Positions 16,297-25,303 are shown, counted from the stretch's first letter. The stretch: 64,000 bases of DNA from Oikopleura dioica (GCA_907165135.1 OU015568.1:8680001-8744000); one strand, 5' to 3'. A program made the numbers and translations. Notes: generated by a model from the sequence alone, not told the origin.

Positions 16297-19200
16297 ATGT
16301 CTGGGAAACTTCTGTTCGATCTGCGAGGACTGAGTCCTCACGCTGCTGCGTGGCAATCCCGCGGAGGAAGCGTCCTGGCTCTTGCGTCAAAAGACAGCGT
16401 CAAACTCTGGGACCGGTCGGGGCAATTAGTCGCCGAGAATGCGGCAAAGCAAGCTCTTATCGCGTGGGATTCTGACGGGCAGATTCTCTCCATCATTCCG
16501 AGCAAGTCGCAGAGTCTCACCGTCCTGATGATGTCAAACAAGCAATCGAGGGTGATTGAGTTTGATTTGAAAGATCAGCTCGTTTGCCAGGCTTGGAGCA
16601 TGAATACAAATTCGCTGGCTATCGGGACGAGTAAAGGATCGTTGATTCTAGTCGATTTCAAGACCGATAAAAAAGTACCTGTCTTGGGAAAACACGGGAA
16701 AAAGATCTCGCACGCTGTCTGGTCAAAAGATAACCGACTGGCTTTGGCATCAATTGACGGGATGATTTCAGTTAATGACTCAAAAGGAGACCTTATTGTT
16801 TCACAACGACTTCGAGCGGAACCACAAGATCTTCAATTTGGCTCAATGAAGAGCGACCAGCGATCGCATGCTCCAGACACGATTTCAGTCCTTCAAGAAA
16901 AACGCTCCATCTTCCTGTGGCGATACGAAGGGGAGGAGCAATCCGAGCTTTCTTTCCAAGCGAGCTATGGGAAGATCATTTCCTACAGTTGGTATGGCGA
17001 CGGATATCTAGCGATCGCCTTTGATACAGGAAGACTTATCGGCGTTTCTACTCATATTGCTGAAATCGGAACAGAAATCTTCAACATTCAAGATCACTCT
17101 GAATTCTGCAGCTCTATGAAGCTCACGAATGATGGGATCAAGCTTGCAACAGCTGGAGAAGATTCAATTCGAGTCCACTCAGTTGCCAATATGAAAGTGA
17201 CGGATTCGATCATTCCGATTCCTGACGAAACTGCCGGCGGCTTTAGGGCCATCCAATGGTCGGACAATGGCGCGCTCATTGCCGCACTCAGTAATTCCGG
17301 AACGATCTACGTTTTTCTGACGGAATTGACTGTTATGGGACAAAGTAATGGGAATAAACTCGCCTATCTCAGCTCATTGTCGGAAATGACGCTTTTTGAA
17401 CCAAACACGGAATCGAAAAAGATCAAGCTTGGCATGGAGCCCAGCTTTGTCGGTCTTGGCCCTGCAGATCTTTGCTACGGATTCAACAACAAGGCGAAAT
17501 TCCATCAACTGGATGATGGAAGCTTGACGGAGAAAGAATACGTTGGCTCTGTAAAACGCGTTTCGGTTGGAAATGATTACGCTGTTGGATTGCTCAGTGA
17601 TGGTCGCCTTCAGTTGCATTTGATTGTCGATGATGGAATGACGCCTGAAAAATCCGTGAAGATCTTCCCCGATGGAAAGTCTCAAGACGGTAACATCATC
17701 GCAGCTGAAATTCGTGGAGAAATGCTCATCTATGCGACAAGTGGCGGCAAATTGAGATTTTTCTCCTCGATGAATGGACAGAAGTAAACTGCTTGGATGT
17801 CAAAAAGACGATCACCGCGATGTATTGCGATACTTCCGGTGCTAGAACCCTTCTCATTGACGATGTCAACAAGGGTTATGTCTACACAGCTGGAGATGAT
17901 ACTCTCATGGAAGTTGGCGAGCTCCCTGGACGGGTAAATGGCTGCCTTTGGGACGCTGTGGAGACGCATGTCTTTACAGTCTGGGATAATCAAAACCAGC
18001 TGGTGGTGTTTTCCGTGCACGATCTTCACGTCGAGGGACAAAAAGTCGAACAAGTAGCGATCGGACGCAAACCAAAAGGGCAATCGCCGCTATTACTATC
18101 TTCCGGGCTTTTGTTTCTTCAGACAAGCTCCGGAAAACTTAACCGAATCACCCTTCCTTCTCATAAAGGATCCGGGCCAGCTGAGATGAGCGACTTAGAA
18201 AATGCCATTCGACTGCGTAACTGGCCTTCTGCTCAAGAAATATGCGCCGAACTTGACGATCCAAAGGCGTGGAATAAAGCCGCAGAAGGTGCAGTTAGGT
18301 GTATCGAAATAGAGGCAGCGATGCGATTCTATCAAAAGGTCCAACATGCGGGAATGGTTTTGAATCTGATGGAATTAAAAACGAAGAAGATATTTTCTAC
18401 CTACGCGGGGCCTGCTCAGTTTTGTTGAGGAACTTTGACGTCGCGCAGAAAGCTTTCTTGCAATCTAGCGAGCCTATTGCTGCGCTAGAACTTCGAAGAG
18501 ATCTCCAACATTGGGAAGAATCGCTCTCCTTGGCAAATCGACTCGCTCCAGAGAGAATACCAGAAATTGCTCGTGAATACGCTGCGCAGCAAGAATTTGA
18601 AGGAAATTACTCAGGCGCTCTTGGTAATTACGAACGAGCAATTCAAGACGGAGCGAAGACGCTTTCGAAGGAGCAGTTATTCCTGGCGAGCTCTGGAATC
18701 GCTCGATGCTCGTTGAGAATGGGCGATTTGAGGAGAGGTCTTCAACTGGCGAACAATTCTAGCTCAAAGGTCTTGAAGCGAGAATGCGCTGATATCCTAG
18801 GTATATTTGAAATATATTTCAAATTTTAACAATATTTTATCAAGACAAAATGAAACAGTACACTCAAGCTGGCATGCTCTATGTAAAAGGAGAGTTCTGG
18901 GAAAAAGCTGCCGCATCATTTCTAAAGGGCAAGGAATCGAATCGAGTCGCTGAAATTATTGATAAAGTTGACGCTGTCAAGATCCACATGGCTTTTGCAA
19001 AAACTCGAGAGGCCGAAGGCAAGATCGATGAAGCGTTGACTGCGTATGGCCGAGCTGGAGACGAAGACGCTCGAATCCGATTGCTGCTTTCTTCGGGCAG
19101 GACTCTTGAAGCTGAAGAAATTGTGAAGGAAACTGGCTCGCTTGAGGGAGCCGATAGAATAGCTCGATACTACATCAAAAAGGCGATTACGGCAGCGCCA

Positions 19201-22200
19201 TTGAGTTTCTCGTTCTTTCTGACTGTAACACAGAAGCTTTCCAACTGGCCCAGCAGCACTCGCAAATGGAGACGTACGCTGAAATTATCGGAAATAGAGG
19301 GGGCATTGATGATTTCAAATCGATCGCGATTCACTTTGAAAACGATGGCAATTTCCTACAGGTATTTTTAGCTAAAAACAATCTTAATCAATCCTGTTTA
19401 GTCTGGCAAGTTCTTCCTGAAAGCAGGCGAATACGACAGAGCATTGAATCACTTCCTCCGAGTAAAATCCGCTGATGATGAAAATATCTCGCTGGCGATT
19501 GAAACAGTTGGAGAAGCGAAAGATGAGAAGCTCAGCCTAGGGTTCCGCACGATTGGAGGACCTTATTTTTCAAAATCCGAATCCTTATTATATCAAAAAT
19601 AGACTTTTTATAAACTATGGGTTTTCGAATACGGCGAAAAAATGATGACAATAATATTCCGATTCACCATCGGAGTCGCCGATTTCTCTCGGTTTTTCAT
19701 ACTTCTAGTGGCAGCACAAACTTTTCTTTAACACTGTAGATAGAATCAACCCTAAAAATCACAAATCTGCAAAAACAAATTTAAAAATTCAAGGTTTTTA
19801 TGTGCTGTCCATTTGAAAATTATCCATTATTTATCATTATGTGAAAATTGAGGAGGCGCGCTCTGATTGGCTGATGAGGAAGACATTCTCAAGAGTCGAT
19901 TTGAAGGAAGATTATTCTAAGCTTCCGCGATTTTGTCCTTGTTGGTGAAAAAGCCCTTTCTCGATAAAATTTTAAATAGAAACCATAACAAAGTAAAAAT
20001 CTTGGATAATTTGACTTTTTACAACAATGGGTGAGGGCGGGGTTGGGGACATAACTGAGATTGATCACCTCAGAGTCCAACGCCGATCTCAAGCCCCTTA
20101 AATAAAAAATCAAGGAACGGGGCTGAAACGGCCCGAAGGGCCGTCAAGCCCCTTAAATTAAAAATCAAGGAACGGGGCTGAAACGGCCCGAAGGGCCGTC
20201 AAGCCCCTTAAATAAAAATCAAGGAACGGGGCTGAAACGGCCCGAAGGGCCGTCAAGCCCCTTAAATTAAAAATCAAGGAACGGGGCTGAAACGGCCCGA
20301 AGGGCCGTCAAGCCCCTTAAATTAAAAAATCAAGGAACGGGGCTGAAACGGCCCGAAGGGCCGTCAAGCCCCTTAAATTAAAAAATCAAGGAACGGGGCT
20401 GAAACGGCCCGAAGGGCCGTCAAGCCCCTTAAATTAAAATCAAGGAACGGGGCTGAAACGGCCCGAAGGGCCGTCAAGCCCCTTAAATTAAAAATCAAGG
20501 AACGGGGCTGAAACGGCCCGAAGGGCCGTCAAGCCCCTTAAATTAAAAATCAAGGAACGGGGCTGAAACGGCCCGAAGGGCCGTCAAGCCCCTTAAATTA
20601 AAAATCAAGGAACGGGGCTGAAACGGCCCGAAGGGCCGTCAAGCCCTTAAATTAAAAATCAAGGAACGGGGCTGAAACGGCCCGAAGGGCCGTCAAGCCC
20701 CTTAAATTAAAAATCAAGGAACGGGGCTGAAACGGCCCGAAGGGCCGTCAAGCCCTTAAATTAAAAATCAAGGAACGGGGCTGAAACGGCCCGAAGGGCC
20801 GTCAAGCCCCTTAAATTAAAAATCAAGGAACGGGGCTGAAACGGCCCGAAGGGCCGTCAAGCCCCTTAAATTAAAAATCAAGGAACGGGGCTGAAACGGC
20901 CCGAAGGGCCGTCAAGCCCCTTAAATTAAAAATCAAGGAACGGGGCTGAAACGGCCCGAAGGGCCGTCAAGCCCCTTAAATTAAAAATCAAGGAACGGGG
21001 CTGAAACGGCCCGAAGGGCCGTCAAGCCCTTAAATTAAAAATCAAGGAACGGGGCTGAAACGGCCCGAAGGGCCGTCAAGCCCTTAAATTAAAAATCAAG
21101 GAACGGGGCTGAAACGGCCCGAAGGGCCGTCAAGCCCTTAAATTAAAAATCAAGGAACGGGGCTGAAACGGCCCGAAGGGCCGTCAAGCCCCTTAAATTA
21201 AAAATCAAGGAACGGGGCTGAAACGGCCCGAAGGGCCGTCAAGCCCTTAAATTAAAAATCAAGGAACGGGGCTGAAACGGCCCGAAGGGCCGTCAAGCCC
21301 CTTAAATTAAAAATCAAGGAACGGGGCTGAAACGGCCCGAAGGGCCGTCAAGCCCCTTAAATTAAAAATCAAGGAACGGGGCTGAAACGGCCCGAAGGGC
21401 CGTCAAGCCCCTTAAATTAAAAATCAAGGAACGGGGCTGAAACGGCCCGAAGGGCCGTCAAGCCCTTAAATTAAAAATCAAGGAACGGGGCTGAAACGGC
21501 CCGAAGGGCCGTCAAGCCCCTTAAATTAAAAATCAAGGAACGGGGCTGAAACGGCCCGAAGGGCCGTCAAGCCCTTAAATTAAAAATCAAGGAACGGGGC
21601 TGAAACGGCCCGAAGGGCCGTCAAGCCCCTTAAATTAAAAATCAAGGAACGGGGCTGAAACGGCCCGAAGGGCCGTCAAGCCCCTTAAATTAAAAATCAA
21701 GGAACGGGGCTGAAACGGCCCGAAGGGCCGTCAAGCCCCTTAAATTAAAAATCAAGGAACGGGGCTGAAACGGCCCGAAGGGCCGTCAAGCCCTTAAATT
21801 AAAAATCAAGGAACGGGGCTGAAACGGCCCGAAGGGCCGTCAAGCCCTTAAATTAAAAATCAAGGAACGGGGCTGAAACGGCCCGAAGGGCCGTCAAGCC
21901 CTTAAATTAAAAATCAAGGAACGGGGCTGAAACGGCCCGAAGGGCCGTCAAGCCCCTTAAATTAAAAATCAAGGAACGGGGCTGAAACGGCCCGAAGGGC
22001 CGTCAAGCCCCTTAAATTAAAAATCAAGGAACGGGGCTGAAACGGCCCGAAGGGCCGTCAAGCCCTTAAATTAAAAATCAAGGAACGGGGCTGAAACGGC
22101 CCGAAGGGCCGTCAAGCCCTTAAATTAAAAATCAAGGAACGGGGCTGAAACGGCCCGAAGGGCCGTCAAGCCCCTTAAATTAAAAATCAAGGAACGGGGC

Positions 22201-25200
22201 TGAAACGGCCCGAAGGGCCGTCAAGCCCCTTAAATTAAAAATCAAGGAACGGGGCTGAAACGGCCCGAAGGGCCGTCAAGCCCCTTAAATTAAAAATCAA
22301 GGAACGGGGCTGAAACGGCCCGAAGGGCCGTCAAGCCCCTTAAATTAAAAATCAAGGAACGGGGCTGAAACGGCCCGAAGGGCCGTCAAGCCCTTAAATT
22401 AAAAATCAAGGAACGGGGCTGAAACGGCCCGAAGGGCCGTCAAGCCCCTTAAATTAAAAAATCAAGGAACGGGGCTGAAACGGCCCGAAGGGCCGTCAAG
22501 CCCCTTAAATTAAAAATCAAGGAACGGGGCTGAAACGGCCCGAAGGGCCGTCAAGCCCCTTAAATTAAAAATCAAGGAACGGGGCTGAAACGGCCCGAAG
22601 GGCCGTCAAGCCCCTTAAATTAAAAATCAAGGAACGGGGCTGAAACGGCCCGAAGGGCCGTCAAGCCCCTTAAATTAAAAATCAAGGAACGGGGCTGAAA
22701 CGGCCCGAAGGGCCGTCAAGCCCTTAAATTAAAAAATCAAGGAACGGGGCTGAAACGGCCCGAAGGGCCGTCAAGCCCTTAAATTAAAAATCAAGGAACG
22801 GGGCTGAAACGGCCCGAAGGGCCGTCAAGCCCCTTAAATTAAAAATCAAGGAACGGGGCTGAAACGGCCCGAAGGGCCGTCAAGCCCCTAAATTAAAAAA
22901 TCAAGGAACGGGGCTGAAACGGCCCGAAGGGCCGTCAAGCCCCTTAAATTAAAAATCAAGGAACGGGGCTGAAACGGCCCGAAGGGCCGTCAAGCCCCTT
23001 AAATTAAAAATCAAGGAACGGGGCTGAAACGGCCCGAAGGGCCGTCAAGCCCCTTAAATTAAAAAATCAAGGAACGGGGCTGAAACGGCCCGAAGGGCCG
23101 TCAAGCCCCTTAAATTAAAATCAAGGAACGGGGCTGAAACGGCCCGAAGGGCCGTCAAGCCCTTAAATTAAAAATCAAGGAACGGGGCTGAAACGGCCCG
23201 AAGGGCCGTCAAGCCCCTTAAATTAAAAATCAAGGAACGGGGCTGAAACGGCCCGAAGGGCCGTCAAGCCCCTTAAATTAAAAATCAAGGAACGGGGCTG
23301 AAACGGCCCGAAGGGCCGTCAAGCCCCTTAAATTAAAAATCAAGGAACGGGGCTGAAACGGCCCGAAGGGCCGTCAAGCCCCTTAAATTAAAAATCAAGG
23401 AACGGGGCTGAAACGGCCCGAAGGGCCGTCAAGCCCCTTAAATTAAAAATCAAGGAACGGGGCTGAAACGGCCCGAAGGGCCGTCAAGCCCCTTAAATTA
23501 AAAATCAAGGAACGGGGCTGAAACGGCCCGAAGGGCCGTCAAGCCCCTTAAATTAAAAATCAAGGAACGGGGCTGAAACGGCCCGAAGGGCCGTCAAGCC
23601 CCTTAAATTAAAAATCAAGGAACGGGGCTGAAACGGCCCGAAGGGCCGTCAAGCCCCTTAAATTAAAAATCAAGGAACGGGGCTGAAACGGCCCGAAGGG
23701 CCGTCAAGCCCCTTAAATTAAAAATCAAGGAACGGGGCTGAAACGGCCCGAAGGGCCGTCAAGCCCTTAAATTAAAAATCAAGGAACGGGGCTGAAACGG
23801 CCCGAAGGGCCGTCAAGCCCCTTAAATTAAAAATCAAGGAACGGGGCTGAAACGGCCCGAAGGGCCGTCAAGCCCCTTAAATTAAAAATCAAGGAACGGG
23901 GCTGAAACGGCCCGAAGGGCCGTCAAGCCCCTTAAATTAAAAATCAAGGAACGGGGCTGAAATGGCCATCCGTGTTTTCCAAGCTAGAAAGCTTTTGAAA
24001 AAATGAGACACGGGTTGGATTCGAGCTCGCCATCTCGTCTGCGCGAAGAGAAGCGCTCACCACTCAGCCAACTCCAGGGTGACGGTGCAGTGCAGTACTC
24101 GATTCATATTCCCGCGAAGAGCGCCAGCCAATCAGCGCGCAGCAGGCCTCCTTGGCAAAATATACTTTGAAGCCCTTAAAAGGGCTGAAGGGGGATTTTC
24201 TGGAAAAACAGAGGCCAGGAATGAATTTCTAGGCATTATTTTGGTGGAATCTCCAAATTTTATTAAAATGAAAAATTTTGGTCCAATCGTGCGGAACCCT
24301 AGCTCAGCCGCACTCTTTTGGACTTTTGCTTGGCCAACATGATGACGGACAGGTTTAATTCTCTTTAAAATGCAATCCTTATATTATTTTAGTCAAAAAT
24401 GCGAAGTTTCTGTTCCAATTCTATGTATCACTCGATCAGTACCAAGAGGCGGCCTCTACGGCTATCATCATTGCCCGCGATCATCAGTTGAAAGGCGATT
24501 ATAAAAAGGTAAAATATCAATTATCTTCCATGATTTCAATCGAGTATTTCAAGGTCGTGAATTCCTGTTTCAAATGTACAAAGACTTGCGCATTCGAGGA
24601 ATCCGCCTCCCCGCAGAAATGTCTTCATCGCTTTTACTTCTTCACTCATACTTGCTGATTCGCCCGACACTCTCCGTTAGAAATGATCACATGACTGCTG
24701 CGAGATTGTTAACTCGCGTGGCTAAGAGCATTTCGAAATTTCCCAAGCACATTGTTCAACTGCTCACAAAAACGGTCATCGAATGTAATAAAGTTGGACT
24801 TCAACGGTCCGCTTTTGAGTACGCGGCGCTACTCATGAGGCCAGAATATCGGTAAGAATGCGCACAAGCCTCGATGAATTGTTAAAAATCATTCAGAGAA
24901 GCCGTGGATCAGAAGTATCGACGGCCTATTGAGAAACTCGTGCGAGATCGTCGAGGAGCCAATGAAGAAGATCCACCTGCTGAAGCAACTCCTTGCCCGT
25001 TCTGTTCGAAAAAGTTCGATTCGTATGAGGTAAATTAAAGCTAGTTTTTCGCCGTTTATTAATCATTTTCAGCTAACATGCCCCTTCTGCCGTGAAGTCT
25101 CCCCTTTTTGCATAGCCACCGGCCGCCATGTGACTGTGGAGGACCTCACCAAATGCCCAACCTGCGAGTCGCCCGCTTTGATTGAACCCCTCGCCGAGCT

Positions 25201-25303
25201 AGTCAATTCTGACGGACATTGCCCGATGTGCTCGGCTTCGCTCAACAACGAAGATCTTGTTATTATCGAAAATGCCGCAACCTATCTGAAGCAACTTGCG
25301 TGA
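16297..25303 (+). CDS. WDR19: WDR19/IFT144 intraflagellar transport A subunit
   Basis: WD40 propellers, TPR region ([17 protein letters not shown]), [32 protein letters not shown] and C-terminal Zn-finger CPFC...CIATGRH...CPMC. Stop 25301-25303, AATAAA near 25365. The model needs six 1-nt homopolymer corrections and removal of the element at 19538-24301. Confidence 0.92.
19538..24301. mobile_element. hAT-type non-autonomous DNA element (4,764 bp) inserted in a WDR19 coding exon
   Basis: Perfect 20-bp TIR TAGGGTTCCGCACGATTGGA / TCCAATCGTGCGGAACCCTA; 8-bp TSD GCTCAGCC at 19530-19537 and 24302-24309. The empty site restores ...[11 protein letters not shown]... No transposase ORF inside. Confidence 0.9.
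20089..23966. repeat. Tandem satellite, ~55-bp unit, about 70 near-identical copies, each with a GC-rich hairpin
   Basis: Unit AAATTAAAAATCAAGGAACGGGGCTGAAACGGCCCGAAGGGCCGTCAAGCCCCTT. Copies differ almost only in homopolymer length. Confidence 0.97.

Follow-up and report, generated by a model that had tools for sequence, protein, structure and literature searches.

Here we describe a 4,764-bp transposable element that lies inside a coding exon of WDR19/IFT144, at positions 19538-24301 of a stretch of 64,000 nucleotides from the larvacean Oikopleura dioica (GCA_907165135.1 OU015568.1:8680001-8744000). This whole stretch is called the window below, and positions given without a scaffold name are counted from its first letter. 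We lean towards the view that the insertion is a very recent, probably heterozygous, disruptive WDR19 allele that is displayed by a mosaic reference assembly; both the heterozygosity and the loss of function are what we infer. An earlier reading of the same window (the original prediction) had seen intron gain in progress, with the element spliced out as a new in-frame GT-AG intron. Transposition into a WDR19 coding exon and the in-frame splice pairs stand up to analysis, whereas the name "hAT" was an overstatement and the in-frame GT-AG pair is no more than chance would supply. The element is probably neither established as a new intron nor efficiently spliced as one.

A transposon interrupts a conserved coding exon of WDR19

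The element has perfect 19-nt inverted ends (21 nt counting the flanking C/G). The left inverted end, TAGGGTTCCGCACGATTGG, begins at 19538, and its perfect reverse complement closes at 24301. On either side of the element is an exact 8-bp direct repeat, GCTCAGCC, at 19530-19537 and 24302-24309. With inverted ends and 8-bp duplication both perfect, we conclude that this is a true transposition into a conserved coding exon. The repeats and the exon matches thereby bear out the original prediction that an element with terminal inverted repeats and a target-site duplication splits the coding sequence of WDR19. The parts of the gene and of the element are:

16297-25300, plus strand: WDR19/IFT144 gene, approximate extent, from exon translations that match human WDR19 (PDB 8fgw_C)
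19402-19537, plus strand: 5′ part of the split exon, ending ...EAKDEKLS plus the first base of an Arg codon, matched to human WDR19 1027-1070
19530-19537, no strand: target-site duplication copy 1 (GCTCAGCC), from direct-repeat comparison
19538-19556, no strand: left terminal inverted repeat, starting TAGGG, with candidate donors GG at 19540 and GT at 19542; inverted pair 100% complementary
19538-20088, no strand: left unique arm, 99% identical to two chromosome 2 copies
20089-23967, no strand: 55-bp tandem repeat, 70.8 units with 98% match, from tandem-repeat analysis
23968-24301, no strand: right unique arm, including the right inverted repeat at 24283-24301, from inverted-repeat and genome searches
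24302-24309, no strand: target-site duplication copy 2, from repeat comparison and splice enumeration
24310-24352, plus strand: 3′ part of the split exon, (R)TLLDF..., from comparison with proteins P0001-P0003
24353-24392, plus strand: ordinary 40-nt GT-AG intron after the split exon

To identify the host gene, exons were compared with solved IFT144 one at a time rather than as a joined exon model. The pieces match human WDR19 (8fgw_C) residues 16-501, 853-962, 963-1025, 1027-1070, 1087-1123 and 1129-1223, and are collinear with the solved protein across the propellers, the tetratricopeptide repeat region and the C-terminus. The insertion falls within the Arg codon of RTLLDF, after ...EKLS, at about human residue 1071/1072, and 16 residues ahead of the next conserved block. 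Proteins P0001-P0003, called on DNA from other samples (ENA, Logan), all read uninterrupted across the empty site, and the 5′ part of the split exon is 96-97% identical to P0001 and P0002. Since the exon is continuous in all three, the insertion is derived. The empty site about which the original prediction had asked is thus carried by these samples, which are probably related Oikopleura DNA; a metagenome scan for the empty-site junction gave 0 matches. The rest of WDR19 is open and conserved, including a 501-amino-acid (aa) exon. The assembly has one copy of the gene, whose other matches in the genome are stop-ridden fragments on the Y-specific scaffold only, where WDR19-like pseudogene pieces at C3:391655-401199 show 57-68% identity and many stop codons.

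Most of the element (82%, 3.9 kb) is satellite, in ~71 copies of the 55-bp unit, and no open reading frame (ORF) of ≥100 aa was found within 19538-24301. In a genome search, the first 186-432 nt of the left arm were common to ORF-bearing copies of 4.5-5.2 kb. Having the same ends as these ORF-bearing copies and no ORF of its own, the element is a non-autonomous, satellite-filled derivative. The 55/56-bp satellite holds a CGGCCC-GAA-GGGCCG hairpin, and the left-arm stretch that runs into the array matches >25 other genomic loci at 82-96% identity.

The element belongs to a small family with hAT-like ends

The left-end 19-mer occurs 34 times exactly in the genome, compared with 0 times for a reversed control. 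Searching the genome with the arms and the 19-mer end identified 58 ends, or ~30 elements, which fall into these groups:

Long copies (4.5-5.2 kb) that carry ORFs: mostly Y-specific, one on chromosome 2
Satellite-bearing non-autonomous copies: the WDR19-site copy, two 99%-identical copies on chromosome 2 and two more distant copies
Miniature inverted-repeat transposable elements (MITEs) of ~570 bp
MITEs of 211 bp

Exact 8-bp duplications flank 10 full copies, the WDR19-site copy and 11 small copies, the degenerate copy L067 being an exception, and every other paired copy checked has the same ends as the WDR19-site element. Identities among copies across the family run from 70% to 99.6%. The satellite array has lengths of 45.8, 55.8, 13.7 and 5.6 units among other non-autonomous copies (L049, L050, L052 and L053).

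As for genomic distribution, ORF-bearing copies are concentrated on the 2.9-Mb Y-specific scaffold (C3), at 464374-469032, 1662232-1666727, 2186547-2191076, 2816583-2825634 and elsewhere. At one Y-specific locus two right ends share their flank, indicating a partial tandem duplication. On chromosome 2 (C5), three family members lie within 38 kb at 9572867-9610273 (a 570-bp MITE, a 5.2-kb ORF-bearing copy and a 4-kb satellite-bearing copy), a cluster that may reflect short-range hopping.

The ends of the family start with TAGGG, in agreement with the hAT-type YARNG terminus, and an 8-bp duplication is also hAT-type. The long copies encode a ~690-aa protein split by a short intron, and the join is shown by P0007, a 607-aa Bergen-type relative. 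Pfam gave no relevant match for the 486-aa and 202-aa ORFs, P0007 or P0010, even at E-values up to 1-10. It found none of the hAT domains (BED finger, RNase-H-like core, PF05699) in the family transposase, and the precomputed Pfam annotation was empty for all 7 transposase relatives. A transposase profile compared with PDB sequences had no match. The AlphaFold model, built from a 7-sequence alignment, was poor (predicted local distance difference test score 44.5), too poor to classify the protein. Residues 298-397 of this poor model follow a strand-strand-strand-helix-strand-helix-strand order, as in an RNase-H-like core, and D303, D368 and C398/H401 (CxxH) are invariant in the alignment. Foldseek searches with the low-confidence model gave weak, mixed matches to the ISCth4 transposase, Hermes and retroviral integrases, and Atlas leads to ZBED/DUF659 families were low-scoring and below trust level. 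Because of the 8-bp duplication and the TAGGG ends, "hAT-like" is a reasonable label for the family, whose hAT membership is putative. The original prediction of a hAT element is therefore sound as to duplication and ends, and went too far for an element with no ORF whose family transposase has no Pfam hAT domain.

The insertion is young and lies in a haplotype-merged assembly

Relative to the two chromosome 2 sister copies, the WDR19-site copy differs by a single private substitution over the 885 bp of its unique arms, besides homopolymer-length deficits inside the arms. Judged by these arms, it is very young. The reading frame of WDR19 as assembled is disrupted at three positions, within ~360 bp upstream and ~100 bp downstream of the element:

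19177-19181, plus strand: A-run at which the WDR19 frame shifts by one base without an intron; human residues 962/963 are in different frames with no gap
24324-24327, plus strand: T-run one base short; LSRTLLDF and LLGQHDDGQ are in different frames here and in one frame in P0001-P0003
24395-24399, plus strand: A-run lacking one base where the next exon starts, from the inferred P0002 read-through frame

The GT-AG intron at 24353-24392 fails to restore the conserved KNAKFLF frame. We also considered a GG-AG reading of this intron (24352-24392), and dropped it for two homopolymer errors once P0001 and P0002 gave the true frame. A single-base deficit in a short homopolymer run is a typical Nanopore error. 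Elsewhere in the window, ORFs of 12.1, 9.3 and 7.4 kb are uninterrupted. Since three real indels within 600 bp could not accumulate beside a near mutation-free transposon, the three disruptions are probably residual Nanopore consensus errors.

The window is on the long arm of the pseudo-autosomal region, in a 17,092,476-bp scaffold of a 64.28-Mb genome with 19 scaffolds. HaploMerger2 favours the longer allele when it merges haplotypes. The published lengths for the OKI2018_I69 assembly are 14,533,022 bp for chromosome 1, 16,158,756 bp for chromosome 2 and 17,092,476 bp for the pseudo-autosomal region (PMC8008620), which by elimination leaves the 12,959,145-bp scaffold as the X-specific one. 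The source was one male with ~3.6% heterozygosity, and a 99.3-Mb first assembly was polished with Pilon and merged by HaploMerger2 into reference and allelic halves (PMC8008620). The reference is, as a result of this merging, a mosaic of two haplotypes, and there is a good chance that a heterozygous pseudo-autosomal insertion would be the allele displayed.

Splice arithmetic and splice signals at the WDR19 site

At the left of the element there is a GT at 19542-19543, and at the right there are AGs at 24301-24302 and 24306-24307. Duplication copy 2 provides the CAG ending at 24307 and, with the last A of the inverted repeat, the AG at 24301-24302. By local enumeration, removal of 19542-24307 (GT-AG) leaves +6 nt, adding Leu-Gly in frame, and removal of 19540-24302 (GG-AG) leaves +9 nt, also in frame. 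The same arithmetic in the original prediction is reproduced by this enumeration. However, the donor zone has one GT, and two AGs 5 nt apart cover two of the three phases, so an in-frame GT-AG pair is no more than what chance gives, about 2/3 of the time.

To judge the splice signals we used six neighbouring WDR19 introns as the comparison set:

Length: 40-46 nt in the six neighbouring introns, 4.77 kb in the candidate intron
A+T content: 62-85% in the neighbouring introns, 50% in the candidate intron
T in the last 20 nt: 40-55% in the neighbouring introns, 20% in the candidate intron
Donor: GTA... in five of the six neighbouring introns, GTTCCG without a +3 A in the candidate intron

Next to these local introns, both splice sites of the candidate intron are weak. 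Its 20% T in the last 20 nt agrees with the caveat attached to the original prediction, which had pointed to a weak pyrimidine tract and a rival AG 5 nt upstream. The candidate is ~100x the local intron length, the satellite contributes 70 GTCAAG motifs, and the whole element contains 262 AG dinucleotides. In RNA, the donor would be buried in the 21-bp perfect duplex of the two ends. A word search with the 66-aa read-through ORF, covering candidates of 36-115 aa only, recovered only empty-site fragments, from other samples, and no +Leu-Gly junction.

Exonic copies across the family differ in their splice solutions

For a survey of the family, each element and one copy of its duplication were removed locally, and the reading frame over the empty site was then examined. 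Of the ~30 elements, at least four lie in conserved exons and five in long ORFs. The conserved-exon copies confirmed are those in WDR19, an SLC12/KCC cotransporter (chromosome 1) and Mot1/BTAF1 (X-specific scaffold). The fourth, on chromosome 1, is in an 85-aa ORF that resembles TBC/RabGAP, judged by eye from neighbouring ORFs and with no Pfam match. The five further copies are in ORFs of 99-180 aa, and seven copies are in non-coding DNA.

This survey had been proposed with the original prediction, and it yielded GT-AG solutions of ≤6 nt net for 4 of the 9 exonic or long-ORF copies, using three different donor positions. Of the remaining five copies, one has no solution, and four are restricted to GC, GA or GG donors or to a GT-AG that adds 36 nt. 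The copies thus lack the consistent splice sites that are a criterion for introners, the known intron-generating transposons. Two of the solutions are scarless: that of an X-specific 211-bp copy (L063:1501-1711; C2:4861357-4861567) with duplication GATGAAGG, which would be spliced as aag|GTAGGG ... GAAG|g, and that of a pseudo-autosomal 570-bp copy (L059:1501-2070; C1:10647488-10648057) with duplication CAGAAGGT. They are scarless because the duplication contains AG|G(T), so that element and duplication are removed exactly. With a G at both its start and its end, a duplication will always yield +6, since G+TAGGG is a donor and CCCTA+G an acceptor.

The Mot1/BTAF1 copy is a 211-bp MITE (L065:1501-1711; C2:9774390-9774600) inside a 619-aa exon on the X-specific scaffold. 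The exon flank matches Mot1 residues 365-656, and the gene is single copy and continuous in relatives. A word search with this flank retrieved relatives at 47-62% identity only, and no Okinawan model or transcript. From its position and splice solution, we consider this copy the best candidate for a real transposon-made intron. The SLC12/KCC copy (L052:557-2268; C4:9151456-9153167, chromosome 1) is 1,712 bp long and satellite-bearing, and splits ...GLQMSSAR|YALLRLNEGPPHTKNWRPQ..., with flanks that match AA_permease and human KCC1 residues 657-705. The enumeration gave no small in-frame GT-AG solution for this copy or for the TBC-like copy, and two near-identical chromosome 2 sister copies in 170-180-aa ORFs, which together with the WDR19-site copy are the family's three youngest, are without a good GT-AG solution. 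The poor splice solutions of these sister, SLC12/KCC and TBC-like copies fit unfiltered recent insertions.

Divergence is 8.5% between the two 211-bp copies and 0.4-8% among the 570-bp copies, one outlier of which is at 20-30%; some of these copies may be old. Although the numbers are small, the pattern suggests a sieve, in which insertions would land anywhere and the exonic survivors, especially on the single X, would be the spliceable ones. Survival of spliceable copies only is contradicted, on the X itself, by the 1,133-bp copy L053:585-1717 (C2:131084-132216, X-specific). Its ORF of 113 aa runs up to a good GTATGT donor and is therefore likely an exon, and no in-frame GN-AG solution was found within 30-45 nt of the element ends.

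Weighing the explanations

We propose that a non-autonomous element filled with satellite, from a small hAT-like family with recent activity, jumped very recently into the WDR19 exon on one haplotype of the sequenced Okinawan male, and that the haploid-mosaic reference displays the filled allele. This allele would be a rare, heterozygous, recessive disruption, its RNA truncated or mis-spliced. Because the site is in a diploid region of a haplotype-merged assembly from one male, a heterozygous disruptive allele explains the WDR19-site copy at least as well as a nascent intron does. Several observations weigh against it. No alternative haplotig with the empty site is present in the 19 scaffolds, and at the WDR19 site further in-frame GC-AG and GA-AG pairs would delete 6-9 nt (for GA-AG, 2-3 codons). 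In O. dioica non-canonical introns make up ~12% of the total and are over-represented among new ones, and many introns with a G-initial donor and AG acceptor are spliced (PMC4122922). Reading through the Mot1/BTAF1 copy meets stops in every frame, and with its duplication GTCGAAAG this copy has a GT-AG solution of +6 nt, predicted to add Ser-Lys, from G+TAGGG and CCCTA+G. Splicing-out of family members is plausible, moreover, because older exonic X-specific copies, which are haploid in the male, have clean GT-AG solutions.

Some of these points also favour the alternative in which the element is spliced in frame from WDR19 pre-mRNA, so that the filled allele would still make working IFT144. 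The confirmed in-frame arithmetic, an insertion point 16 residues short of a conserved block and the permissive spliceosome implied by the non-canonical introns of this species (PMC4122922) would all suit a nascent intron. So would the precedents in the family, Mot1/BTAF1 at +6 nt and one X-specific and one pseudo-autosomal scarless GT-AG, and the 8.5% divergence of the two 211-bp copies, which may be old; the precedents themselves lend some family-level support to the idea that an inverted end and a duplication supply splice sites. For WDR19 itself, however, we find a nascent intron doubtful. Its donor, GTTCCG, is without the +3 A of five of the six local donors and would sit within the duplex of the ends, its acceptor region is poor in T, and it would span ~100 local intron lengths with all the internal GTCAAG motifs and AGs noted above. 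An in-frame GT-AG is expected by chance in about 2/3 of cases, and five of the nine exonic or long-ORF copies have no small in-frame GT-AG solution, one X-specific copy having no GN-AG solution at all, so the family is not built for splicing.

It is highly improbable that the insertion is a somatic event, a minority-read variant or a mis-join rather than germline. The local consensus is indeed poor, with its three homopolymer frame errors, and a long satellite array is hard to assemble, but a mis-join would not make a perfect 8-bp duplication and inverted ends at a site that is continuous elsewhere, and Nanopore coverage was ~221x, from sperm-filled males (PMC8008620). The chance that we are looking at a truly decayed, long-dead WDR19 haplotype, with three frameshifts and a transposon, is similarly slim. 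It would account for four disruptions in one gene copy, but each frameshift is the lack of one base in a homopolymer of 4-5, the remaining gene is open and conserved, including its 501-aa exon, and a near mutation-free transposon with an intact duplication leaves no time for neutral decay.

A broader reading takes the family as a live intron-generating transposon, in which TAGGG...CCCTA ends would create introns together with duplications that start or end with G or contain AG|GT, the WDR19 copy would be a newborn intron, and older copies would already be introns in X-linked genes. As a joint claim we regard this as unlikely. If true, it would explain in concrete terms how O. dioica came to gain introns on a massive scale, a gain so far without explanation. 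Most introns of this species have been replaced, by a route of gain that is unsettled and for which reverse splicing has been proposed (PMC4122922), and a transposon family whose ends and duplications can turn insertions in coding exons into GT-AG introns would offer an alternative open to direct testing. On its own the WDR19 copy is no proof of intron-making; the shortlist is the Mot1/BTAF1 copy, the second X-specific copy and the one pseudo-autosomal copy. In practical terms, the reference carries young insertions and homopolymer frame errors in essential genes, which can mislead gene models.

Comparison with known systems

As in transposon-to-satellite derivatives, the transposase region of the non-autonomous copies is replaced by a 55/56-bp array, here of 5.6, 13.7, 45.8, 55.8 or 70.8 units, and compared with such derivatives there is nothing unusual in the satellite-bearing copies. 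The maize Ds element, a non-autonomous hAT, is reportedly spliced from exon insertions in waxy and adh1, in work by Wessler and colleagues from the late 1980s. The likeness is an exonic element whose removal from RNA is imprecise, through near-end donors and nearby acceptors, with small in-frame changes. Unlike Ds, for which spliced RNAs were reportedly sequenced, the WDR19-site element is read from DNA, and is a putative hAT. In the larvacean Fritillaria borealis, non-canonical introns are said to derive from transposons, as described by Henriet and colleagues in 2019; PMC13326754 is related work. There too small inverted-repeat elements lie in the genes of a larvacean, and a permissive major spliceosome removes them; in contrast to the genome-scale non-GT/AG ends with RNA evidence in that species, we have a handful of copies with GN-AG candidates.

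A parallel in mechanism would be the introners. Intron-generating transposons are an established concept (Gozashti et al. 2022, PMC9860276; Huff et al. 2016, PMC5684705, as relayed in PMC13326754), including in a tunicate, Styela clava, where they have been validated (PMC12130899). PMC9860276 makes no mention of Oikopleura, and we found no paper that describes intron-generating transposons in O. dioica. Introners differ from our family in having many spliced copies with consistent sites, whereas we have ~30 copies with inconsistent candidate sites, read from DNA, and several exonic copies without a splice solution. Like introners, the family is an inverted-end DNA transposon found in exons, with candidate splice sites that are part element end and part duplicated target. 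Here as there, a G before TAGGG would make the GT, a G after CCCTA would make the AG, and AG|GT duplications would allow scarless removal.

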